Positions 1,011-61,594 of a DNA stretch of 64,000 nucleotides are shown piece after piece. The number at the start of each line of letters is the position of its first letter. Within the stretch, counting starts at the first letter, position 1. The stretch lies in NCBI GenBank assembly GCA_964252035.1, contig OZ176203.1. One strand, given 5' to 3'. Under the pieces are notes generated by a model, which worked only from the letters and a program-made list of their open reading frames with translations, searched no databases and was not told the origin of the DNA. The position numbers were made by a program, and so were the translations under genes. Origin of the DNA: Podarcis erhardii (Eukaryota).

Positions 1011-1020
1011 ATTTGTGATA

Positions 1021-1246
1021 AAGTGGTACCTCGGGTTAAGAACTTAATTCGTTCTGAAGGTCTGTTCTTAACCTGAAACTGTTCTTAACCTGAGGTACCA
1101 CTTTAGCTAATGGGGCCTCCCGCTACCACCGTGCCACCACTGCACGATTTCTGTTCTCATCCTGAAGCAAAGTTCTTAACCCGAGGTACTATTTCTGGGT
1201 TAGCGGAGTCTGTAACCTGAAGCGTCTGTATCCCGAGGTATCACTG
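1021..1246 (-). mobile_element. Tigger-like (TcMar) MITE, family A
   Basis: Ends (C)AGTGGTACCTCGGGTTA ... CCCGAGGTATCACTG, TA flanks. Same family as the copies at 13382, 16913, 27865, 30025 and 40443. Confidence 0.9.
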
Positions 1247-3343
1247 TATAGTGCACCACAGGGTGCAGTCTTGTCTTCACTGATTTTTAACATCTATATG
1301 AAGCCACTTTGCGCAGTTAGGAATTTGAAGTCAAATGAAACCAATTAAGCTTAAGTTTCAGGGCCCAGAAGTGTCCCAGAAGTGACTTTAGTCCACCTTG
1401 CTTCCAAATTTTGCTTTAAAAATGTATCATGCATTTCCCTAATTTTCATCCCCCTATAACTCAAAAACTAGGGATAGGGGTTTTTTTGTTCACACCAGTG
1501 ACTTTGACATGTGAGATAATTCAGAACAGCAATTTTAATCAAGATTTGAGATGTAGGAGCTATTTAAAAATAAATAAATGTGGAGTTCTGTCATGGAACA
1601 ACCCTGTTGAAGATGGTAAGAGTGGTTACCCCTACCTTGTTGCTGGTTGCAAAACTGCCCCCATATCAGTTCCAGCTGCAGGGTCCCCAAAATGTAGGTC
1701 CGCCACTGAACCTGAATGACTAAGGATTGTTTCAATTTGGTTGGGTGCTTCTTTATGCTTAATTTATTGTCCATGACTACTTTTGTAATTATGTGTGTTC
1801 CTTTTCGTGTGGTAAGCTGCCTTGAGCATGGTTTTTAACTATGGAAAGGTGGCATACAGATAAAATGTTGTATACAGATTCTGATCTTTCCCAGACAGAA
1901 AGAAGCATAGCAGTAAACCTTTTCCTTGTGAGAGAGGCCTTGCAAAATCTGACTGAAAATAGAGAAAATTGCAACCTGTCAGATGGTTACTTAGCTTTTC
2001 ACATGCTTGTCATATAATGAAAATGTCACGCCATCTATCATCCCTTCGTTCTTACCTTGGGTAGAGGACATGCTTAGTAAACCCATAATGTGTAAAAGGA
2101 AAAAGGCAGGGGAGCTACCAGTTCTTAGCAGAATTACTTTGATAGGCACCAAATGGAGGTGTTGATTTTAGTTTTGCAGAGAAATGCAGTCAGAACACGT
2201 AGTGCTGGGCATCAGAAGGTCAGATCACATGTGGCTATCTGTAGCATTTCAATTTCCTTCGTTCTGTTTCAATTTAAATCTCCTGCTTAATTTGAGCCTC
2301 CTCATTATTTCAGGTTTGATTGGGCTCTCTGTCGATGCTTGTGGGGTGTTTTACTGATAATAAGGACATATTTCAGGTAAATTTAGAGTAAGATGCAATA
2401 CAGTAAATCATTAGTTACGCCATTATGGCCAAAACCCAAATTAACTAGATCTTGGAGAGAGCATTATTTTTTAACAATAACAGTTTCCCCAGACCTTTCC
2501 CCAAAGTAAGATTTATTGCCAAGGTAGTAGGACAGCCACTTTTATGGGACTAGAATTTCAACAGCAAATGAAGCGCAGTCAGGAAGCATCTACCATAATG
2601 AACAAAATATACAAGTTTCCCTGTAAAAAGACTTTTATGTGTCATGCCTGCGTCTCTGGGTCATTGCAGCAGAAGGGGTCAAGTTGCATGTCCTGTATTT
2701 ATAGGTTTTCTCTTGTGGGGCAAATATAATTGGGGTGGGGTGGGCAGTTTAGATCTGGAAAGCGGCATTCAGAGATAGGCTTAGCTCCTTTACCCATTGC
2801 TGTGGCCTTGATGTGACTCAATGCTGTGGACATGATCTGATGAAAGGTTAAAAACCTCAGAAGATCTGATCATCCATATCTCCCATCATGTTAGCCATTT
2901 TGCCCTAGCCTTGCCAGCTACTGCTGCCACCACGTACCCTGTGCTATTTTTCTAGAAAAAGAGGTGCCAGAACTCACCTTGTTCTCTGGTAATGGTAATG
3001 GCCTCCACCTGCAAAAGAGTCCTGCATGCACCACTGCCATGCAGCCGCCCTGATAAACATGCATTTGATATTCATCAGAAAGTATTCTCCATGCATACAG
3101 AGATGTGCATGGATCATTCCTACACATCAGGTGAGGATTCTAGCCAATCAGGATCCCTTCTCTCAAGTAGGAGTTTTCTATGCATACATCTGTACGTGTG
3201 GAGACACTTTTTCCAAAATGAACATCAAATAGACATCCAGCAAGGGAACATGGCAGTGGCCAATGGGAATGGCAGTAGGCAGGACTAGCCTAAACACCTC
3301 TGCGATCCCCTCTGTAGGTTCACATTAAAAGAGGCAGTCTGAG

Positions 3344-12094: not shown

Positions 12095-13374
12095 CAGTAT
12101 TTCCCAACCTTTTTTGGGCAAAGGCACACTTGTTTCATGAAAAAAATCTCGAGGCACACCACCATTAGAAAATGTTTAAAAAATTAACTCTGTGCCTATA
12201 TTGACTATATATAAAGTAACTCTCTTTAATAGGCATCAAATAAACACAAAGAAAGTACCGTATTTTTCGCCCCATAGGACGCACTTTTTCCCCTCCAAAA
12301 ATAAAGGGGAAATGTGTGTGCGTCCTATGGGGCGAATGCAGGCTTTCGCTGAAGCCTGGAGAGCAAGAGGCATCGGTGCGCACTGACCCCTCTTGCTCTC
12401 CAGGCTTCAGGAAGCTGTCCGCAAGCCTTGCACGCCCGGCAGGAGCTCCCGCCAGGCGCGCAAGGCTTGGGGCGGCAGCCTGTTGCCCGAAGCACGCGGA
12501 GCCCTCCGGAAGGCTCCCCGTGCTTCGGGCGAGTGTCTGCAAGCCTTGCGCGCCCGGCAGGAGCTCCCGCCAGGCGCGCAAGGCTTGGGGTGGCAGCCTG
12601 TTGCCCGAAGCACAGGGAGCCCTCCGGAGGGCTCCCCGTGCTTCGGGCGAGTGTCTGCAAGGCTTGCGCGCCCAGCAGGAGCTCCCGCTGGGCGCGCGAG
12701 GCTTGGGGCGGCAGCCTGTTGCCCGAAGCACGCGGAGCCCTCCGGAGGGCTCCCCGTGCTTCGGGCGAGTGTTTGCAAGCCTTGCGCGCCCGGCAGGAGC
12801 TCCCGCTGGGCGCGCAAGGCTTGGGGCGGCAGCCTGTTGCCCGAAGCACGCGGAGCCCTCCGGAAGGCTCCCCGTGCTTCGGGCGAGTGTCTGCAAGCCT
12901 TGCGCGCCCGGCAGGAGCTCCCGCCAGGCGCGCAAGGCTTGGGGCGGCAGCCTGTTGCCCGAAGCACGCGGAGCCCTCCGGAGGGCTCCCCGTGCTTCGG
13001 GCGAGTGTCTGGAAGCCTTGCGCGCCCAGCAGGAGCTCCCGCTGGGCGCGCAAGGCTTGGGGCGGCAGCCTGTTGCCCGAAGCACAGGGAGCCCTCCGGA
13101 GGGCTCCCCGTGCTTCGGGCGAGTGTCTGCAAGCCTTGCGCGCCCGGCAGGAGCTCCCGCTGGGCGCGCGAGGCTTGGGGCGGCGGCACGGGGCGGCCGG
13201 CCGAAGCGAGCGGCGATGGGATTTGGGAGGGAGCTCGCTCGCCGCCCCGCGTGTGCTCGCCGCCGCCGCCGCCCCGCCTCTTGCCACCGGACTCGCCCGC
13301 CTCCCTCCCACGGCACACCAGGCAACGTCTTGCGGCACACTAGTGTGCCGCGGAACACCAGTTGGGAAACACTG
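12095..13374. mobile_element. Composite non-autonomous hAT element
   Basis: TIRs CAGTATTTCCCAAC ... GTTGGGAAACACTG. Perfect 8-bp TSD CCTTATAC (12087-12094, 13375-13382). Contains the left end of a mariner-type MITE (TACCGTATTTTTCG, 12256) and a tandem array. Confidence 0.9.
12421..13184. repeat. GC/CpG-rich minisatellite, about 6.5 x 118 bp, each unit two hairpins
   Basis: Units start at 12421, 12539, 12657, 12775, 12893, 13011 and 13129. Each has AAGCCTTGCGCGCC..GGCGCGCAAGGCTT and GCCCGAAGCACG-GGAGCCCTCCGGAGGGCTCC-CGTGCTTCGGGC. Confidence 0.95.
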
Positions 13375-13381
13375 CCTTATA

Positions 13382-13862
13382 CAGTGGTACGTCAGGTTAC
13401 AGACGCTTCAGGTTACAGATTCCACTAACCCAGAAATAGTACCTCGGGTTAAGAACTTTGCTTCAGGATGAGAAGAGAAATTGTGCAGCAGCAGTGTGGC
13501 GGCAGTGGGAGGCCCCATTAGCTAAAGTGGTACCTCAGGTTAAGAACAGTTTCAGGTTAAGAACGGATCTCCGGAACAAATTAAGTACTTAACCCAAGGT
13601 ACCACTGTACTTCTGTTGATGCAGCCTGGCCTGTGGAATTGTATATGCTGATAACGAACACAAGTGTGGATCTTTTGTAGCCAAAATGGTAGCATCCATC
13701 AACCAGAAAGAGATATCAGCAGGTCTGGGAGAGCCTCACAATTTGCAGAAGTACAAAGTAACTTTTTTTTGCAGGGAAAACCTTACTTGAGGAGAAGAAC
13801 CGAGAAACACGAATTACGAAAGAAACACGAACGAATTAAATTCTTAACCCGAGGTACCACTG
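13382..13862 (+). mobile_element. Tigger-like MITE family A expanded by a templated insertion (two right ends)
   Basis: Left TIR at 13382. First right TIR ends at 13607. Then 201 bp copied from 40240-40440 (inverted), a short filler, and a second right TIR ending at 13862 followed by TA. Confidence 0.9.
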
Positions 13863-13898
13863 TATGTGTTTGCTTCTTTGTTTTGTGAGGTAACCCAG

Positions 13899-14030
13899 CA
13901 CTGTTTTTCTAGAAACAGAGGTGCCGGAATTCACCATGAACACATCTCTTGTTCTCTTAGCATGGCAATGACACCCACCTGAGAGGTGCCAGTAGTGAGT
14001 TCCTGTGAGTTCCAGCTGGGGAAAGCCCTG
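13899..14030. mobile_element. Short hAT-type MITE remnant
   Basis: CAGCACTGTTTTTCTAGAAA...GAGGTGCCGGAA...GGGGAAAGCCCTG. Related fragment at about 2943-3010. Confidence 0.5.
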
Positions 14031-14713
14031 GTTATACCCTGGTTATATACCCTGGTTATATTGAGGCAGCTTACAATATAGTTAAAATAAAATTGATGAT
14101 ACATTACCTGTTAGGGTGAATATATAAGCTTTCCCCCTGGTTCTCCAGTGTACCAGCCGCCATTCAACTGAATGTTCTGTCCTAGGGCTGGCTGTTGAAG
14201 CAGACAGATGGTTCTCGCTTTCAAGCCAGGGCTGCCTCACTTGGCTACTGCTGAGGCCTCTCTCAGCCTCTGGGTCTGGTGGCAGACGCAGAAGGCACTA
14301 AGGGAGGAGAGATGTTGCAAGCCTCCTGCCAATTCTCAGATATTCCAACTTCTGCTGGGCCGCTGAATCTCTCAACCACAGCAAGGCCTCATTGGAAATA
14401 ATCCTGGCCCAGAAATGGCTTCCAAAGCAGCCAGATGTCACAGGTCAGGGCTTCCTGACTGTGTTGCTGCTGATCATTATTGTAGCTTCAGGTTCTGGTG
14501 TTTGCCTCCCTCCTTCCTCGTGATAAAGTGGTGCAATGGTGCAAATGAAATCGATAAAGGTATTGAAATAGGCTGCAGTTCAACCACTGAGCATCTTCTT
14601 GGTGTAAGGTCTTCTGCAATTAGATTTTTCTTGCTTCCCACCAGAATAAGAGCTATAGCTCTATCAATCCTCTAACTGATTTCAATGGAGACACTGTGTA
14701 TCTATCTATTAAT

Positions 14714-15045: not shown

Positions 15046-16912
15046 TCTATCTATTAATAGCTACATCTATCTATTCTGCTTTTAAAGAAATTGTATGTGT
15101 GCAGAATTCTACCGCCTATATTCTAAAATACAAATTTCCGGCCGGAATTAATCTGTTTGGAACCAAGAAGATGTAGAATCCCAGAACAATTATAGAATGG
15201 AAATTTTCCATTCTGCTTCTCCATAGCGATATCAAACCTGGCCTCCACCTGTGCTACAATTTTGAGGGGGTGGGGTGCAGTTCTATCTACGTTGCAGTGC
15301 AGCCTGAATAGAGCATCTGTCCACCATTTTCGGGAGCAATCCTATGTAAAAGAAGCTGGTGTAAAGCAAGCTGATCTTAAGCCAGCGTAACATTGCACCA
15401 GATCCAAATTCCTTAGCCTTAGAGTGAAAGCAAGCTTCTACACTGAATTTCCAAGTAACATGGCTGAACTGAATGGGTTCAAGATCCAGCCTATGTACCC
15501 CCTCTCTGGTCCTGCTTCCTCCACATCTCTGGAATGCTCCTTGCTGGAGACTTACACCAGTCTTGGCCAGCCAAACCCATCAATTTCCCCTCTAAATCTG
15601 TTCAATTGTTACATGTAAATATATTTGGGAGCCAAAGGTACTGAAACAAAGAGATTGTGACTTCTCCAACCCGTGTGTTCATAGGTGGTATCACATGTGC
15701 ATCATAAATGTGATGGCTGAGAGTAGCCTTCAGCTCCAAAGTGATTGCCATTATTCAAAATGATATTTCAGTGAACTGTGGCTCACGGTCAAGGAGTGGG
15801 TGAATCTTTAACCAAGCTGACAGTGAAATGTATAATACTTTATATCAACCAATAATGCCCTAATTTAAGAAAGAAAGCCACACGCAAGACAAAAGAGTCA
15901 GGCATATATTCTTTTCTGTTTCAAGATAATTTTAAGCAGCAGATGGGACTTTATTTTAGCTATAAAGCTGATATTGTAAACCAGGATGCTGCAAAACTTC
16001 CCCGGGGGTTTCAAACCCTGTTTCAAGTCTTTCAAAACAAAGCACGACATTTGGACTGGTGAAATGTCATCATACCACCCATCTCTCTTGCCTGCCCCCC
16101 AAGTATAAACTGAAAAAGTGGTCTCAGCAGAGCTCATCCAGCCTGCTGTGATTTTCCAGTCAGGAACCTTTGTGTAATCTTTATTCTGTTCTCCTTATTT
16201 CAGTCTCCACTATACCTCATCCTTTGATTGTAATGTTTATAGAATAATACATTTATGTAGCAGGCATTTTTTATCATATTATGAAAGGGAATTGGATATT
16301 TGAATGAGAACTAGAGTCGTCCAATACCAATACAACCACAGAGGATTAAATGGAAGATGTTACAGGTATTTTAATGCATTATGTAGTGGAAAGCATTGGG
16401 TACAATGGAATGAAAAACTGACTTCCCATATTTGAGAAATCGTCTTCTGCAGATACCCTCCTGATACAAATACCACCCACTTCTGCTCTGATGACCTCAT
16501 GTTCTGTAGTAGGTTGTTTTCTTCTGTTTCTCTTTATCATGTTGCAAAACAAATGTTCCAATGCAGATGAAGCTGCCAACAGATATTCAGCCCTTTGTGT
16601 GGCCATTGCCAACAGTAGTAAGGAAACAATCACTTGGTATTGCTTTATTTGTGTTCCTTATTATTAAGACACTAACAAAATGGCTGTACCAGTTCTAATG
16701 GTGCACAATTGGCAAGGGGGCCCAATTGGGTACCATATACAAGCTGCACAATGGATTTGGCCCAAACAGTTTGAGCAGCCACATTTAAATACTGTATAAA
16801 GATTCCCACAATAAGACTATGTTGTTGGTACGTTCCAGCTACTGATTTCATAGGCCTTCCTAATTATCTGGTGTGCTGTACAAATTTGCAAAGTCTGCAG
16901 CACTTATATATA

Positions 16913-17151
16913 CAGTGGTACCTCAGGTTACACACGCTTCAGGTTACATACGCTTCAGGTTACAGACTCCGCTAACCGAGAAATAGTACCTCAGGTTAAG
17001 AACTTTGCTTCAGGATGAGAACAGAAATCGTGCTCCAGTGGCACAGCAGCAGGAGGCCCCATTAGCTAAAGTGGTGCTTCAGGTTAAGAACAGTTTCAGG
17101 TTAAGAACAGACCTCCGGAACGAATTAAGTACTTAACCCGAGGTACCACTG
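16913..17151 (+). mobile_element. Tigger-like MITE family A
   Basis: TIRs CAGTGGTACCTCAGGTTA / TAACCCGAGGTACCACTG, TA TSD. Confidence 0.95.
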
Positions 17152-17224
17152 TAACTGGAATCAAGCGTTATGTTCTTCAAAAGTTCTTCTGCTGCTTCTA
17201 CTTCTAATACTATTACTAATAATA

Positions 17225-19922: not shown

Positions 19923-20001
19923 TGTGTTTTTCTAGGGTTTTGCCACAAGTGACGTGCAACAGGAAATTTCTCCTCACACACCGTGAGCCCAGGCCGGAAA
20001 A

Positions 20002-20350
20002 GGGACGCGGGTGGCGCTGTGGGTTAAACCACAGAGCCTAGGACTTGCCGATCAGAAGTCGGCAGTTTGAATCCCCGCGACGGGGTGAGCTCCCGTTGCT
20101 CAGTCCCTGCTCCTGCCAACCTAGCAGTTCGAAAGCACGTCAAAGTGCAAGTAGATAAATAGGTACCGCTCCAGCGGGAAGGTAAAAGGTGTTTCCGTGC
20201 GCTGCTCTGGTTCGCCAGAAGCGGCTTAGTCATGCTGGCCACATGACCCGGAAGCTGTATGCCAGCTCCCTCGGCCAATAAAGCGAGATGAGCGCCGCAA
20301 CCCAGAGTCGGTCATGACTGGACCTAATGGTCAGGGGTCCCTTTACCTTT
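20002..20350 (+). mobile_element. Sauria SINE
   Basis: Full length, GGGACGCGGGTGGCGCTG ... CCCTTTACCTTT. Sits within the 5' extension of the RPS21 retrocopy. No clear TSD. Confidence 0.95.
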
Positions 20351-20827
20351 AATCACCTCCAGCATGAGGAGCATGCAGTGCACCGTGGTGCAGAAGCAAA
20401 GGCAGCGGTTGGGGTACCGCAAGCTCCACCTTGATGGCAGCTGCTGCTGTGGGGAAGTAAGCGGAAGGAGGTTCCCAAGGAGGATACCAAGGAGGAGCTG
20501 GGGGGAGGCAGCGCCCACTCTGCGCCGGGCCCTGCCGTCAAGGAAACTGAGCTGAGGAAGGTGGTGAGCGGGCTGGGGGCAGGGTGGGAGTTTGAGAGGG
20601 GAAGGGGGGGGGAAGGAAAGAAGGGCAGGGAGAGGTAGCTGAGGCAGCTGAGGCAGCGGCGGTGGCAGCTACTTTTCCTCCGGTGGTCAAGCCAACGGGG
20701 TTTCAGTAGGCAAGCTAATCGTCAGCATGCAGCCCGGAGGGGGAGGAAAAAGGGGGACTATTTTTTTTTAGCAATGCGGTATTTTCATGGTTTAACCTAA
20801 CCAAGTAGTGAGTAGCCGTTGATTTGC

Positions 20828-22189: not shown

Positions 22190-22433
22190 GCCAGTGTGGT
22201 GTAGTGGTTAAGAGCGGTAGACTTGTAATCTGGGGAACCGGGTTCGCTTCCCTGCTCCTCCACATGCAGCTGCTGGGTGACCTTGGGCTAGTCACACTTC
22301 TCTGAAGTCTCTCAGCCCCACTCACCTCACAGAGTGTTTGTTGTGGGGGAGGAAGGGAAAGGAGAATGTTAGCCGCTTTGAGACTCCTTCGGGTAGTGAT
22401 AAAGCGGGATATCAAATCCAGACTCCTCTTCTT
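22190..22433 (+). mobile_element. tRNA-derived SINE (Squam2-like)
   Basis: Near-identical to the copies at 3344 and 61346. Confidence 0.85.
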
Positions 22434-23089
22434 CCCCACTTCCAGGTACTCTCTGAAGACTAAAGAAGAGACCCCCTTAAGAATATTAGGGGGGTGAGCA
22501 GGGGAAAGACTAGACCATGTGAAAAATGAACGTAATATTTTAGCTGTAGTTCATTCATTTTCAGCTTGATATTCTTGTTATAAAAAAGCGTACCTGGACA
22601 TTCTGTTACTGCACCCATAACCTAGGTTTAAGGTGCCATTTAGCTCCTAGCTTCCATCTCTCAGTTTTTAACACTAGTTCATTGTTTAGTAAGTGATGGC
22701 TGTGTGGAAATCTGTTTCTGATGTAGATCTCTTTATTTGATTTGGAGCTCTTTCACTTATGCATAATGTAATCTTGGTCCTGAAAAGGAGATCGACTTGC
22801 CAAAATGCTTGTTGATGACATTTACTGGCATGTCATGTATTTTGGGAATGTGTATCTGAAGGTGCGTCTCCATCCATATTGCAGTCCCACTACAATATGC
22901 ACAACTGGAACCATCTCAGGCATGCTTCTCTATAGACTCTTACACTTTCATGTTGGGTGTTAACTTGTGTGTTAGTTGTGGCTACTGTTCATTAAACACT
23001 TTTCAAAGATTTGTGCAGAACTTATACAAACCAGATTTTAGGGTTTTACCTCCAAGCTTACAATCTAAATGTGGGCGAGAAATCTCCCT

Positions 23090-23625
23090 AGCTTGTTTTT
23101 CCTGCTCTGGAGGGTAGGACTCAAACAAGTCACAAGAAAGGAGGATCCAGCGAAACATCAGGAAGAACTTTCTGACAGTAAGAGCTGTTCAACAGTGGAA
23201 CAGTCTCCACTGTGAGGCTGTGGACTCTCCTTCCTTGGAGGTCTTTAAGCATCGGTTGGATGGCCATCTGTCATGGATGCTTTAGTTGAGATTCCTGGAT
23301 TGCAAGGGGATTGGACTGGATCAGGCATGTCCAAAGTCTGTTTCAGGGGCTTAATCCAGCCCGCCAGTTGGTTTAATCTGGTCCCTGTGGCAGTTTATTT
23401 CCTGAGGTAAAAACCAATAAAAAGCTCAACAACTTCAATCCAATAAAATGCTCAATAACTTTGGGGTAAAATCGTAAAAATAAAATAAAAAAACTCAACA
23501 ACTTTGGCCCTTTGGTTGGTCCTCACACATGTTCACTTCATCAAATCTGGCCCTCTTTGAAAAAAGTTTGGACACCCCTGGACTAGAAGATCCTTGGCGT
23601 CACTTCCAACTCTACAATTCTATGA
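23090..23625 (+). mobile_element. CR1 LINE 3' end, interrupted by a hAT MITE
   Basis: GCTTGTTTTTCCTGCTCTGGAGGGTAGGAC...TTGGACT|GACTAGAAGATCC...TTCCAACTCTACAATTCTATGA, the CR1 tail. Confidence 0.9.
23322..23580. mobile_element. hAT (Charlie-like) MITE
   Basis: TIRs CAGGCATGTCCAAA / TTTGGACACCCCTG. 8-bp TSD with two mismatches (GACTGGAT/GACTAGAA). Confidence 0.85.
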
Positions 23626-25330: not shown

Positions 25331-26051
25331 TAGCTCAGTGGATGTTACCTTTCCTGGCACCAGCTACCGAAATTCCTTCTTCTGCACAACCATGACAACT
25401 ACAAGTACACCACCCCTTTCTGTCTGCTCGGGCTCAAACTTAGCGAACCTGAAAAATCCAGGAGTGATCCTTCTTTCTCTTTGCTGCCCACATTCATATC
25501 ACTAGATATGCTTTGTGAGAAGTTAAGGAGGACCAGTTATTGAGTAACATGTGGCAGCTTGGTCTGACGTTAGTTCTGGCATCTCAGTGTGAGATCCACC
25601 CAGCAGGATTTTTGCACCAGTTACCAAAATCTACATCAAATGCAGGATTATGTGAAAACATCAGCAGTTTCCCAGCCCCTGTTGATAATATATGTGCTAA
25701 TAAATTTCACAGGCAAAGACAACATAATGCAGATTTCTCCCCTGAAGAGAGGAGGTTGGCAATCTGTCTTTGTGAATATTTATGATGGGTCCCTAGTTTT
25801 TCCATTGACAGAATACTTAAATTCCCCTTTCAATAAAACTTGCTAAACTGTTTTTTCCATAATCCTGTAAAGCAGATATTGATGCCTTTATCAGCTTATC
25901 ATTACACAAAATTGTGATGGTATCAACAATTTCTTCTTCAACACCCCGATTCTTTGCTGTCTGTGGGAGAAACAAGCACCCCTTCAGATGCAAAGTTCAC
26001 TGCTAAGAAAGTAAGCAGAATATTATTCTGTTATAAACATGATGTAATGTA

Positions 26052-26402
26052 GGGACGCGGGTGGCGCTGTGGTTTAAACCACAGAGCCTAGGACTTGCCA
26101 ATCAGAAGGTCGGCGGTTCGAATCCCCGCGACGGGGTGAGCTCCCGTTGCCTGGTCCTTGCTCCTGCCAACCTAGCAGTTCAAAAGCACGTCAAAGTACA
26201 AGTAGATAAATAGGTACCGCTCCAGCGGGATGGTAAACGGCGTTTCCGTGCACTGCTCTGGTTTGCCAGAAGTGGCTTAGTCATGCTGGCCACATGACCC
26301 GGAAGCTGTACGCCGGCTCCCTCGGCCAATAAAGCGAGATGAGCGCCGCAACCCCAGAGTCGGTCACAACTGGACCTAATGGTCAGGGGTCCCTTTACCT
26401 TT
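26052..26402 (+). mobile_element. Sauria SINE
   Basis: Full length, TSD AATGTA. The empty site is visible in the duplicate at about 21075-21085. Confidence 0.95.
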
Positions 26403-26452
26403 AATGTAGTGCCATTTGTGAGTAACATGGCCATTCCTAGCAGTTGATATAA

Positions 26453-27711: not shown

Positions 27712-28310
27712 GGGACGTGGGTGGCACTGTGGGTTAAACCACAGAGCCTAGGACTTGCCAGTCAGAAGGTCGGCAGTTCGAATCCCCACAACGGGGTGAG
27801 CTCCCGTTGCTCGGTCCCTGCTCCTGCCAACCTAGCAGTTCGAAAGCATATCAAAGTGCAAGTACAGTGGTACCTCGGGTTACAGGCGCTTCAGTTTACA
27901 GACGCTTCAGGTTACAGACTCCGCTAACCCAGTAATAGTACCTCTGGTTAAGAACTTTGCTTCAGGATGAGAACAGAAATCGTGCTCCGGCAGCATGGCA
28001 GCAGCAGGAGGCCCCATTAGCTAAAGTGGTGCTTCAGGTTAAAAGAACAGTTTCAGGTTAAGAACGGACCTCCGGAACGAATTAAGTACTTAACCCGAGG
28101 TACCACTGTAGATAAATAGTTACTGCTCCGGAGGGAAGGTAAGCGGCGTTTCCATGTGCTGCTCTGATTCGCCAGAAGCGGCTTAGTCATGCTGGCCACA
28201 TGACCCGGAAGCTGTACGCCGGCTCCCTCGGCCAATAAAGTGAGATGAGCGCCGCAACCCCAGAGTCGGTCACCTCTGGACCTAATGGTCAGGGGTCCCT
28301 TTACCTTTAC
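27712..28310 (+). mobile_element. Sauria SINE split by a MITE
   Basis: 5' part 27712-27864, 3' part 28109-28310. TSD CAATTCTTAT at 27700-27709 and 28831-28840. Confidence 0.95.
27865..28108 (+). mobile_element. Tigger-like MITE family A inserted into a Sauria SINE
   Basis: TIRs, with duplication of the TA in the SINE sequence AAGTA|GATAAATAG. Confidence 0.95.
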
Positions 28311-30024: not shown

Positions 30025-30255
30025 CAGTGGTACCTCAGGTTACAGACGCTTCAGGTTACAGACGCTTCAGGTTACAGACTCTGCTAACTCAGAAATAGTA
30101 CCTCGGGTTAAGAACTTTGCTTCAGGATGAGAACAGAAATCGCATGGCGGCAGAGGGAGGCCCCATTAGCTAAAGTGGTACCTCAGGTTGAGAACAGTTT
30201 CAGGTTAAGAATGGACCTCCGGAACGAATTAAGTACTTAACCCAAGGTACCACTG
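30025..30255 (+). mobile_element. Tigger-like MITE family A
   Basis: TIRs CAGTGGTACCTCAGGTTA / TAACCCAAGGTACCACTG. Confidence 0.95.
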
Positions 30256-31460
30256 TACCGATGAATAACTTTTGTTCTTTAATTTTAAACTGAAATCAGT
30301 ACAGATACAAACATATTTGTGGTGGATGAAGCTTTGAGAAGTAGCTATGAAAACTCTCATCATTTTTCTCTTAAAACACTGCAATCATAATTTGTTTTAT
30401 TGACTCAATCATTTTTCTTTCTTTGTACTGGAAACCATGCTGGTAATTGCAACATTCGCTGTCGGTGTTTGTTTACTAGAGTTCTGATGGCTGAGCTGAG
30501 GCATACTTTTTTCTGAATTAACACTGGAGGCAAACTTCACTCTCCTAACCTAAAATGTATTTGTGCAGGATGTATGAACAAGAATTACATGCCAGACTCC
30601 AAGAGAACTGTGATGTTAGGGGAAAGGGAAAGGCTCAGCTGCCATGTATTTTTGTGATGTCACAGGTGGTACTTAGTCCATAGCAACAACAAGGGATGCA
30701 GCATCACAATCTCCACAGGCCTCACAACTGTGAGTTCCCCTCAACTGTGCTTTGTGTGCTTCTTCAGTTTTAGACCAATTTTCATCTGTACCAAATAGGT
30801 GCAAACCATAAAACTGTTGGTGGTCAGAGGCAGGAGGCGACTCTTATTTTTGTACAACCACAGACCCTCCAATTGTCCCTATTTTCCAGGGACGTCCCTG
30901 ATTTAGAGAAGCTGTCCCAGTTTCTAATTTGATTCCGGAATGTCCCACTTTTCTTTAGTATGTCCCTATTTTCATTGGAGAAATGTTGGGGGGTATAGAG
31001 TTATCCGACCCACTAGCTATCTGAAGGCAATACTGTATAGGTAACTTTCTTTTTAAACGTTTAATGTTTATTATGTTTTTATACATGTTGGAAGCAATGT
31101 GTTGGGTATAAATAGTAAAATTATCATTATAGAAGAGACACACAAAGAGGAGCCTCAGATGATGATTTCAGGGTCCAGGTCAGTTCACATAGAGAGAGGC
31201 AGTCCTTGAGGTATTGCGGTCCTGAGCCAATCACATACCTTCCAACCCATGGGCTGGTGGCTCCCCACCCCTTTTATAAAACTCAAGGGTTATATTCAAC
31301 ATTAGTTGTAGTCAGAGTAATCCATTTAATTGGATGACCGAGTAATCCATTTATTTTGATGGCTCTACTTTGAGTGTGAAGCATTTGGATATCACTCCCA
31401 ATTATTAAGAACACCAACACAGAAAGACACTAAAACAACCTAAACAGAAGAGAAGGCTAA

Positions 31461-38426: not shown

Positions 38427-40419
38427 TAGTGAGAACCTACACTTTTCCCATGGAATGTGCACAGGTAATTGGAAACCTTGATTGTTCATGGCTCTTGATC
38501 CATGTGGAGGATACGGTGCATGTTCAGCTAAACATATGTTGGTTCCCCCTTCAGACCTTCCTCCCCAGTCAGAAAAGTTGGGGTGATGCTGAGAGGGACA
38601 GAAATGTTGGAGCATGTGTTGGCCCACTTCTTCCTCTTTTCTGAATAATTCCTGTTGGGGCTTAGGTGAATTATCATTCTACAATGTAGTTTTTAAACAG
38701 AAACTGTAATTCTGATCTTATTAAAATATTGATTATTATATCCTTTTATTTTATTTTTCTGGTTGTTTTTTAAATGTATTTCATTTATTCTGAGAAAGGA
38801 AAGGAAATTTATTCTTTCATAGGAAAGAGGGAGGGAGATCCAGGAGTGGTTGGGTGAGTGGGGATCCTTTCCAAAACATAAGGTTATATTGGATAAAAGC
38901 CATCCTGTTAGCTCAATAACTTCTTCCTGTGCAATGGGACTTCCTCTTCTCTTCTCATGCGGGGGGGGGGGGGGAGAGGGAGATGAAGTCCTGTAGCACA
39001 AGTGAAAGTCATTGCACTAACAGAATGACTTTGTTGGCTGCAACCCATAAACTAATACTTTTAAAATGCTAGTGTTTCTTCATGTCTTACTCAAGTATTT
39101 TTGTAAACAAAATGCAGCTGAAAAATGAGGATCTCCCCCATCACTGAAATATTTGAAGATAATTATTAAAGTAACAAAGTATATATATATACACTTTTTC
39201 AGGTTTTAGTTACATCCATATAATACATTGTCCTAGCTCCATGAATTCTATTAAGTATGATAAAATAATAACTAAATTATACTGAGTTTGATAAATAGTT
39301 ATTCTTGTCTTAATGAGATCATCACATTGAGTTATGCACTTAAAGGACTTTCCTTTGTAGAAGAGAGTGCAATTAATGAGTTATATTTTTAGTTCCTTGA
39401 CAAACGGTTGTCATAAAAAAGGCATAAAATGTACTAAAAGATTATCTGTGTACATGTGCAATCTTTTCTGAAAACAGTTATTTCTTTAACTGAATAAGAT
39501 ATTGGCTCATATCCCGCATAGTATTATAGAACAAAATGAGTGGGTTTTAATAGATGCAGTGAAATTAATTATACAGCATACAGAAAGGGCTGGTAGATTT
39601 AAGGTGCTCTTAGGACCACTTCACAATGCTAAGTTTCTTGATATAAAGTGTATGCAGGAATACTGTCATGTAGATTATAGCTCTGCCCATGGCAGCCAGC
39701 AGTTATCCCATGGTTGGTTGAATGGGGCTTGTAGTCTGTTGACTCCATAGCAGGGGTGGGGACATTTTGTGACTGGCGGGCCAGATTTTAATCTCCCCAA
39801 CCCTGGTGGCCAAATCTGGCAGGTGGGTGAAGTCCACAGCTGGCAATGCTGCACTTTGAAGCCCTGGTTTTCAGAACGTCAAAGTGCAGCATGTTTACAA
39901 AGGGCTTTCAGCCACAGACAGCTATTTGAACCTCAGGTTTATAGAGTCTGTGGATTTAGACAATCTCTAAAAAGCAGGGACAGGAATTTTATCTCCCCAT
40001 TTTAGCACCTAGATTGAGAAATAAAGCACTACGTTTTTTTAGAGTCCCTCTCTAAAGATCAGGCAGAGCTTCATCTTGCAATGTGATCTATAGGAGCTGG
40101 CAAGTCAATTCCTGAAGCTCACTGAGGTGGATCTGATTTGCAGGCTGCCGGCTAGTCACTCTTGCTGCAGAGCTCACATGCCATGGAGATAAGTATGCCC
40201 ATTACATTCTGTAACCACTGAACACACTCATTCCTCATTGTGTTTCTCGGTTCTTCTCCTCAAGTAAGGTTTTCCCTGCAAAAAAAAGTTACTTTGTACT
40301 TCTGCAAATTGTGAGGCTCTCCCAGACCTGCTGATATCTCCATCTGGTTGATGGATGCTACCATTTTGGCTACAAAAGATCCACACTTGTGTTCGTTATC
40401 AGCATATACAATTCCACAG

Positions 40420-41222
40420 GCCAGGCTGCATCAACAGAAGTACAGTGGTACCTTGGGTTAAGTACTTAATTTGTTCCGGAGATCCGTTCTTAACCTGAAA
40501 CTGTTCTTAACCTGAAGCACCACTTTAGCTAATGGGGCCTCCCGCTGCTGCCGTAGCACAATTTCTGTTCTCATCCTGAAGCAAAGTTCTTAACCTGAAG
40601 CACTATTTCTGGGTTAGTGGAGTCTGTAACCTGAAGCGCCTGTAACCTGAAGTACCACTGTACAGTGTCCCGATCAAGGGAAGTAATAGCCCCACTCTAT
40701 TCTGTCTTGGTCAGACTGTACCTGGGGCACTGTGTCCAGTTCTGGGCACCACAATTTAAGAAGGATATTGACAAGCTGGAACGTGTGCAGAGGAGGGCAA
40801 CCAAGATGATCAAGGGTCTGGAAACCAAGCCTTATGAGGAACTGTTGAGGGAGTTGGGTATATTTAGCCTGGCAAAGAGAAGGCTGAGAGGAGATATGAT
40901 AGCCATCTTTAAATATCTATAGGGCTGTCACATGGTGGATGCAGCAAGCTTGTTTTCTACTCTGGAGGATAGGACCAGAGCAAATGGATTCAAGTTACAA
41001 GATTCTGACTAAACGTCAGGAAGACCTTTCTGAGAGTAAGAGCTGTTTTTTCTGTGGAAGAGACTCCCAGGAGAGGTGCTGGACTCTCCTTCCTTGGAAG
41101 TTTTTAAGCAGAGGTTGGGTGGCTATCCGTCATGTATGATCTTGTTAAGATTCCTGCAGTCTAGGTGGTTTGACTGGATGAGCCTCAGGATCCCTTCCAA
41201 TTTCACAATTCTGTTCTATGAG
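40420..41222 (+). mobile_element. CR1 LINE 3' fragment, with a MITE inserted near its 5' end
   Basis: [50 protein letters not shown] is CR1 ORF2. Tail TTCCAATTTCACAATTCTGTTCTATGA. Confidence 0.95.
40443..40660 (-). mobile_element. Tigger-like MITE family A (donor for the insertion at 13.5-13.8 kb)
   Basis: TIRs, TA TSD (40441-40442, 40661-40662) splitting the CR1 sequence CAACAGAAG|TA|CAGTGTCC. Confidence 0.95.
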
Positions 41223-55019: not shown

Positions 55020-55480
55020 TTTCATCAACAGAAATATAGTGTCCAGGTCAAGTGAAGTAATAGCCCTGCGCTATGCTGCCTTGAGATCCAGAGATCACAC
55101 CTGGAATATTGTGTCCAGTTCTGGGCACCACAAAAAGGATATTGACACACTGGAATGTGTGCTGAGGGCAACCAAGATGACCAAGGGTCTGGAAGCCAAG
55201 CCTTATGAGGAATGGTTGAAGGAGCAGGGTGATGTTTAACCTGGTAAAGAGGAGACACTGAGGAGATATGATTGCCATCTTCAAATATCTAAAGGGCTGT
55301 CATGGGAAAGATGGAGCAAGCTTGTTTTTGCCTGCTCTGGACTACAGGACCCAAACCAATGGATTCAAGTTACAAGGTGGTGGACTTTCCTTCCCGAGGT
55401 GTTTTTAAGCAGAGGTTGGATGGCCATTTGTCATGTATGATCTAATTGAGATTCCTGGACCGGATGACAATTCTACAATT
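55020..55480 (+). mobile_element. CR1 LINE 3' fragment
   Basis: Homologous to 40420-41222, with frameshifts and internal deletions. Confidence 0.9.
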
Positions 55481-61345: not shown

Positions 61346-61594
61346 AGCCAGTGTGGTGTAGTGGTTAAGAGCGATAGACTCGTAATCTGGGGAACTGGAT
61401 TTGCGTCTCCGCTCCTCCACATGCAGCTGCTGGGTGACCTTGGGCCAGTCACACTTCTCTGAAGTTTCTCAGCCCCACTCACCTCACAAAGTGTTTGTTG
61501 TGGGGGAGGAAGGGAAAGGAGAATGTTAGCCGCTTTGAGACTCCTTCGGGTAGTGATAAAGCGGGATATCAAATCCAAACTCTTCTTCTTCTTC
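61346..61594 (+). mobile_element. tRNA-derived SINE (Squam2-like)
   Basis: Near-identical to the copies at 3344 and 22190, (CTT)n tail. Confidence 0.85.

Follow-up and report, generated by a model that had tools for sequence, protein, structure and literature searches.

A MITE located at 13.4 kb of the 64-kb stretch of Podarcis erhardii DNA analysed here (contig OZ176203.1; hereafter the window) carries, between its own two ends, a copy of the right end of an inverted sister MITE together with 201 bp of the LINE that adjoins this sister. It is likely that the MITE at 13.4 kb was broken and that its repair proceeded through invasion of the inverted sister, guided by homology, with overshoot into the sister's flank and closure by end joining. 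The resulting element, bounded by TIRs, about 480 bp long and probably single-copy, holds foreign DNA as well as a second right TIR in its interior.

The MITE Family and Its Surroundings

One MITE family is represented in the window by six copies of 218-245 bp each (Table 1). The copies start with CAGTGG and end with CCACTG, their TIR arms (20-21 nt) are 85-90% complementary, and TA is found on both sides of five of the six, the remaining copy having a mutated TT on one side. The TA duplication, the TIRs, the small size, the non-coding sequence and the large number of copies identify the family, as far as such sequence features allow, as a Tc1/mariner-type (Stowaway-like) one. In the left part, the copies differ from each other by 7-15%, and each public run contains over 20,000 contig pieces that match the MITE at 93% identity or above. 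An additional tandem unit, about 16 nt long and similar to GCTTCAGGTTACAGAC, is present near the left end at 16909-16948, 27863-27900 and 30025-30062, and is absent from the copies at 1.0, 13.4 and 40.4 kb. The occurrence of this unit in three of the six copies suggests that two subfamilies may exist.

With regard to other repeats, at 12395-13374 a GC-rich tandem array with units of about 118 bp (93-97% unit-to-unit identity) is found inside an element whose hAT-like terminus, ...GTTGGGAAACACTG at 13361-13374, lies 5 bp from the TA of the recipient MITE. Two other interspersed pairs with 94-95% identity (20001-20353 and 26051-26405; 22190-22434 and 61347-61591) are probably SINE-type; they have nothing to do with the capture.

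Table 1. Positions of the composite element, its donor locus and the six MITE copies in the window
Feature	Position	Strand	Remarks
Left TA target-site duplication of recipient MITE	13380-13381	+	Read from the sequence; TA in all six copies, one mutated to TT
Recipient MITE's own left part, including left TIR (CAGTGG...)	13382-13534	+	13 mismatches and an 8-nt indel against the sister, 91.0%
Switch zone, same sequence in donor, recipient and most of the family	13535-13568	+	Diagnostic sites absent between 13534 and T13569
Donor-type right end of sister MITE, including TA (13608-13609)	13569-13609	+	T13569, A13578, A13596
201-bp cargo, copy of CR1-like LINE flank (40440-40240, inverted)	13610-13810	+	199/201 identical
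18-nt templated filler, GAATTA + CGAA + AGAAACAC	13811-13828	+	Matches to both flanks
Right end of the recipient MITE itself (TIR up to 13862) and right TA (13863-13864)	13829-13864	+	32/36 to donor-type end
Parental cargo copy	40240-40440	-	In decayed CR1-like LINE continuing on both sides of the MITE and past 40240
Donor sister MITE	40443-40660	-	Inverted relative to recipient; TA at 40441-40442 and 40661-40662
MITE copy 1	1019-1250	-	Same family, within the 64-kb window
MITE copy 2 (recipient)	13380-13609	+	Within the 64-kb window
MITE copy 3	16909-17153	+	Within the 64-kb window
MITE copy 4	27891-28110	+	Within the 64-kb window
MITE copy 5	30025-30257	+	Within the 64-kb window
MITE copy 6 (donor)	40441-40662	-	Within the 64-kb window

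Mosaic Structure of the Composite Element

Alignment of 13370-13870 with the reverse complement of 40230-40670 by BLAST gave a single alignment comprised of two regimes. In the left regime (13382-13534 against the sister MITE), 132 of 145 positions are identical and an 8-nt indel is present, an identity that is no higher than that of any other MITE pair. In the right regime (13535-13810 against the reverse complement of 40515-40240), identity reaches 274 of 276 positions, and the step from 91% to 99.3% at 13534/13535 is sharp (Fisher p = 3.4e-5). The copied tract contains the last 73 nt of the sister MITE (73/73 identical to 40515-40443), the TA and 201 bp of the sister's flank. Both of its mismatches are adjacent, at 13708-13709 in the 201-bp flank, where the recipient reads AA and the donor TG. 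If the tandem array at 12.4-13.2 kb is set aside, no other repeat pair in the window reaches 99% identity, and no further copy of the cargo was found there beyond those of the recipient and the donor. All of these points, i.e., the reverse-complementary tract, its two flank mismatches and the divergence of the two MITEs upstream of 13535, had been read correctly in the original prediction.

Three variants, namely T in GGATCT, A in GAACAAATT and A in CCCAAGG, occur jointly in only two of the six MITE copies, as had been predicted; the last of them is found alone in one further copy. The last recipient-specific sites are 13532 and 13534, and the homologous entry point may lie anywhere in 13535-13568 because this zone is devoid of diagnostic sites. 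On the other side of the cargo, the recipient right end retains the family CG at both sites where the donor reads CA, so that 13829-13862 can be assigned to the recipient itself. The element is thus a mosaic of the order recipient-donor-recipient, given its own variants on the left and its own CG-bearing end on the right.

The donor-type right end forms an internal, second right TIR of the composite, and the right TIR expected beyond the cargo was indeed observed at 13829-13862, followed by TA at 13863-13864. With the TA at 13380-13381, the whole composite is flanked by TA, and both TIRs and both TA duplications are intact. With respect to its extent, the end proposed earlier (13862) was retained; the proposed start (13535) had to be moved, since the MITE proper begins at 13382. 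A 74-aa ORF spanning the filler was looked up in public assemblies, with no record returned.

The Donor Locus and the Direction of Copying

The MITE at 40.4 kb lies in a TA of a LINE that runs on both sides of it. On the plus strand, its left flank ends with ...CATCAACAGAAG-TA and its right flank starts with CAGTGTCCCGATCAAGGGAAGTAATAGCC. The LINE translation to the left of the MITE ends in ...GCINRS and the right flank can be translated as well, and these translated flanks are taken here to be the conserved tail of CR1-type LINE ORF2. Pfam returned no match for seven LINE ORF pieces, and only unnamed eukaryotic clusters were obtained for LINE ORF pieces from the protein atlas; the CR1 label is given because of the ORF2 tail motif and because of further CR1-like LINE tail copies in the window, at 55.0 kb (55023-55460) and 23.1 kb (23100-23306).

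The copy at 55023-55460 shares 79% identity with the right flank of the 40.4-kb MITE across 243 nt and is 5′-truncated 14 nt upstream of the position of this MITE. It can be used as an empty-site control because the truncation lies upstream of the insertion position. Across this position it reads CATCAACAGAAATA directly followed by TAGTGTCC, or CATCAACAGAAATA-TAGTGTCCAGGTCAAGTGAAGTAATAGCC across the same point, uninterrupted and with a single TA. Since this independent LINE copy crosses the insertion point intact, the context at 40.4 kb is native and the site is the donor, in agreement with the direction proposed originally. At 13.6 kb, the same 201 bp are bounded by MITE pieces on both sides. 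By our reading of the reading frames, the end of the tract at 40240 is internal to the LINE and coincides with no natural element boundary. The copying was non-reciprocal, the donor context being intact.

In the donor LINE, 20 nt past the end of the copied tract, a 13-mer on the minus strand (40208-40220, CAGTGGTTACAGA) is similar to the left terminus of the MITE without its middle part. This resemblance is probably due to chance.

Several other ways of obtaining the two copies were considered and rejected. The 13.6-kb locus does not qualify as the donor, as the LINE is continuous across the 40.4-kb MITE. An inversion via crossover between the inverted MITEs would move sequence without duplicating it, whereas the cargo is present twice. 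A larger segmental duplication that was later trimmed is incompatible with a left MITE part that is 9% diverged and carries an indel, against 0.7% in the tract, and a second near-identical pair is absent from the window.

The Filler Junction

The junction between the cargo and the right end of the recipient reads AGAAACAC-GAATTA-CGAA-AGAAACAC-GAACGAATTA, in which the 18-nt filler (13811-13828) is GAATTACGAAAGAAACAC. The filler is of templated origin. Briefly, ACGAATTA at 13809-13816 is found again at 13831-13838, AGAAACAC at 13821-13828 is found again at 13803-13810, and AGAAACAC plus GAA occurs twice without mismatch, as an 11-nt unit at 13803 and 13821, 18 nt apart. Of the 18 filler nucleotides, 14 fall within matches of at least 8 nt to the flanks on the two sides, and a coverage as good occurs in 0.1% of shuffled fillers and 0.5% of random 18-mers from the window (P ~0.001-0.005); the patchwork of re-copied junction sequence described earlier was substantiated. 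Both templates, ACGAATTA and AGAAACAC, lie within 25 nt of the junction, which has a 2-nt AC overlap and contains copied runs of 6, 4 and 8 nt from both sides. At the site where an A stands in the donor MITE, the ACGAATTA piece has G, as does the right end of the recipient itself, and it was hence templated by the very end that was being joined. A simple tandem duplication of the junction was rejected, as the 18-nt units share 11 nt and then read TTACGAA and CGAATTA, respectively.

It was reported that polymerase-theta-dependent junctions display iterative synthesis in runs of 3-8 nt (PMC2895639). The run lengths of the filler are consistent with a polymerase-theta end-joining signature, from which the participation of this enzyme may be presumed.

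Copy Number and Relative Age in Public Sequencing Data

Public runs from nine organisms were found, four of which were examined as Logan contigs over 13190-14390; such contigs have one depth figure each and are incapable of proving absence. In the run from the species of the window (X15), 2 of 474 letters of the flank differ. The X15 contig covering 13598-13707 has a mean depth of 20.9, compared with 11.8-14.8 in neighbouring single-copy contigs, which suggests that the cargo occurs in about two copies per haploid genome. At 13708-13709 this run contains three paths, AA (depth ~7), TG (9.8) and AG (~4; possibly an error), so that both variants of the window, AA of the recipient and TG of the donor, are present in it.

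In the other three runs (X1, X18 and X5), the flanks are 1-2% diverged from the window, and each run has one contig that passes through the cargo into the donor flank and carries AG, although contigs of this kind cannot prove that the capture is absent. The ancestral state is hence AG, the only variant seen in these three relatives, and it follows that the donor and the recipient each gained one substitution after the event. As AA, TG and AG (the last at ~4) co-exist in one sample, at least one of these two post-duplication substitutions is possibly still polymorphic. A contig joining the MITE right end to unique flank (13844-13933) was found in all four runs, which makes the MITE insertion older than the capture. 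In the contigs of these runs, other MITE copies crowd the joints and loose ends, and the unconverted ancestral MITE was not recovered there. Taken from these variants, the event appears to be young relative to the MITE family, with an age of at most about the split from the relatives represented by X1, X18 and X5.

An assembly artefact, i.e., a chimeric join or a misplaced haplotig, is very improbable. It is true that none of the contigs listed for the four runs crosses 13811-13843, that the filler junction is hence read from the assembly alone, and that high-copy MITE sequence is present throughout the region. However, an 18-nt filler templated from both sides is not something that assemblers create, the recipient's own A13709 was seen in public contigs beside the donor variant, the mean depth is raised over the shared part, and the window has no sequence gaps.

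The summed contig depth is in the tens for the cargo bins and in the hundreds of thousands to millions for the MITE bins, so that the cargo shows no sign of having been amplified. This low copy number speaks against a multi-copy mobile composite. The related possibility that the sister MITE was transduced with its 201-bp flank by end bypass, which is a recognised capture route where the parental copy abuts an element, hardly fits either, since the left 153 bp are recipient-specific and collinear rather than nested and since the outer right TIR is missing at the donor locus beyond 40240. A mobile origin of either kind has only a very slight probability, and there is no sign of mobilisation of the composite.

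Proposed Mechanism of the Capture

The repair of a break from a nearby MITE copy, as originally suggested, agrees with the chimeric structure and the templated filler, both of which tested positive; the break, its position, the SDSA-like synthesis and the involvement of polymerase theta are what we infer from these sequences. According to this favoured scheme, a double-strand break would have occurred in the right sub-terminal region of an old, TA-flanked Tc1/mariner-type MITE (13382-13862), between the family positions equivalent to 13535 and 13574. Sites specific to the recipient extend to 13534, those specific to the donor begin at 13569, and the right end of the recipient itself is taken up again at the position in the family that corresponds to 13574. 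As the replaced part of the original MITE amounts to only about 5-39 bp, the break should have been internal and resection small.

The left 3′ end would then have invaded the homeologous sister MITE, which is inverted and lies on the same chromosome at a distance of 27 kb. The homology of this end to the sister amounts to at least 34 nt of perfect match within about 190 nt at 91%. It counts against the scheme that the donor distance is beyond that of most published cases (5-15 kb). Synthesis would have copied the last 41-75 bp of the sister MITE and then 201 bp of the adjoining LINE. The displaced strand presumably failed to anneal at the second end, where homology is limited to 36 bp at 89%, and this shortage may account for the failed annealing, the 201-bp overshoot and the closure by end joining. 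Finally, microhomology-primed end joining to the recipient's own right end would have left the 18-nt insertion, made of 4-8-nt runs from both ends. The outcome is non-reciprocal, with the donor unchanged.

Transposase-triggered abortive gap repair could also be envisaged, in which the whole MITE is excised, the gap is refilled from the sister chromatid on two sides, and the left strand switches from the sister chromatid to the ectopic sister MITE before the nascent strands are end-joined. Gap repair after excision, which is among the two scenarios put forward in PMC8277862, is the classical way in which DNA transposons acquire internal rearrangements and filler, and the intact TIRs and TA duplications of the composite would suit it. 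It requires, however, one template switch more than an internal break, and the loss of only about 5-39 bp contrasts with the large, terminal-biased deletions expected from excision. Moreover, the family copies differ by 7-15%, against 0.7% for the capture, so that the event probably took place after the family had ceased to be active. This route is accordingly considered quite unlikely, and an internal break remains the preferred origin.

Replicative template switching (FoSTeS/MMBIR or BIR) would begin with fork stalling or collapse in a hairpin-prone MITE end and proceed through a one-ended break templated on the sister MITE, with a microhomology switch back. Fork stalling in TIR elements was invoked in PMC8277862, and short serial template switches are typical of MMBIR junctions. 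The right sub-terminal MITE sequence folds as a single-stranded hairpin (-15.4 kcal/mol, z = -3.6) with the inferred break zone in its loop, but the equivalent region of another MITE copy (z = -1.6) folds no better than shuffles, so that the predicted hairpin gives only a hint of what caused the break. In addition, the filler templates are at most 25 nt from the junction, which end joining fits at least equally well. Replicative switching is thus unlikely, with the reservation that its product is indistinguishable from that of two-ended break repair; a two-ended break and a collapsed fork fit the sequence alike and cannot be told apart by it.

Comparison with Known Systems

Ectopic gene conversion is the non-reciprocal transfer of a tract between diverged copies of a repeat family, in which the donor remains unchanged, and the tract of an ordinary gene conversion stops within the homology. 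The event described here resembles it in the non-reciprocal tract between two MITE copies and the unchanged donor. It differs in that the tract extends 201 bp past the homology and was apparently closed by end joining.

In Drosophila, it was found by Chan, Yu and McVey in 2010 that aborted SDSA after P-element excision is finished by polymerase-theta end joining (PMC2895639). Homology-started synthesis followed by end joining, as well as insertions templated by the flanks in short iterative runs, are common to that system and the present one. On the other hand, the Drosophila work was experimental and involved a transposase break and a sister-chromatid template, whereas the lizard case is a natural germ-line event with an ectopic homeologous template.

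Pace et al. (2009) described 824 repair-mediated duplications inside human TEs, with microhomology, 1-68-nt filler and small deletions, which were attributed to SDSA with ectopic templates (PMC2671141). The present element shares with them the presence of 100-300 bp of nearby chromosomal DNA within a TE, the microhomology, the filler and the small deletion. However, the published events are mostly less than 5 kb from their donor and their inserts are unalignable to the host TE, whereas the tract here begins in the TE by homology.

In animals, 370 Pack-TIRs, 115 of them in Tc1/mariner elements, were reported by Tan et al. (2021); nearly all are single-copy and were ascribed to transposition-independent gap filling; a cis bias was noted, the breakpoints were internal, and the orthologous site held an older TE (PMC8277862). 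Similar to these, the composite has TIR sequence on both sides, a parental copy on the same chromosome, a single copy, an internal break, a small deletion, and microhomology with a short insertion at one breakpoint, and the element predates the capture. Its entry, in contrast, relied not on microhomology but on a perfect match of at least 34 bp inside some 190 bp of homology at 91%, its cargo is LINE debris, its donor is 27 kb away (less than 15 kb in the majority of Pack-TIRs), and its parental DNA abuts a sister element of the same family. With regard to the definition used in that survey, the recipient TIR parts (13382-13534 and 13829-13862) flank a cargo that is 99% identical to 40440-40240. 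The parental copy, however, is part of a LINE and borders on the donor MITE (40441-40443), and Tan et al. took out those parental copies that had a TE no more than 100 bp away and admit that linked cases were possibly missed (PMC8277862). Because its parental copy touches a TE, the composite would not be catalogued as a Pack-TIR by this criterion, though it works like one.

The earlier proposal of a Pack-type capture route holds insofar as a TIR-bounded element with foreign cargo is present. Its novelty was overrated, as the route has been published (PMC8277862, PMC2671141). Likewise, the DNA between the TIRs is a copy of host sequence as proposed (LINE, 199/201), but it is a decayed LINE fragment and not a gene. 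The case is a clean, ordinary instance of published repair-mediated duplication, and the only twist is the guidance of template choice by a sister element.

Implications for MITE-Rich Genomes

No functional consequence is evident, the cargo being a decayed LINE fragment in non-coding DNA. As a young natural record, the element leaves the homology entry, the overshoot and the templated end-joining closure legible to the base, with the direction and the relative age fixed by outgroup variants. It serves as an example of how a TIR-bounded element may come to carry foreign cargo independently of transposition, and it highlights a class that is filtered from published surveys, in which the parental copy lies beside a sister element.

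It might tentatively be proposed, with considerable doubt, that sister-element-guided capture is a recurrent and uncounted route by which abundant MITE families gain their neighbours' flanks. In that event, homology between copies would pick the template, and overshoot and end joining would fix the flank of the neighbour between TIRs. If this were true and common in MITE-rich genomes, the birth rates of Pack-TIRs would be underestimated, since one animal-wide survey discarded parental copies that touch TEs, and MITE density itself would drive local duplication.
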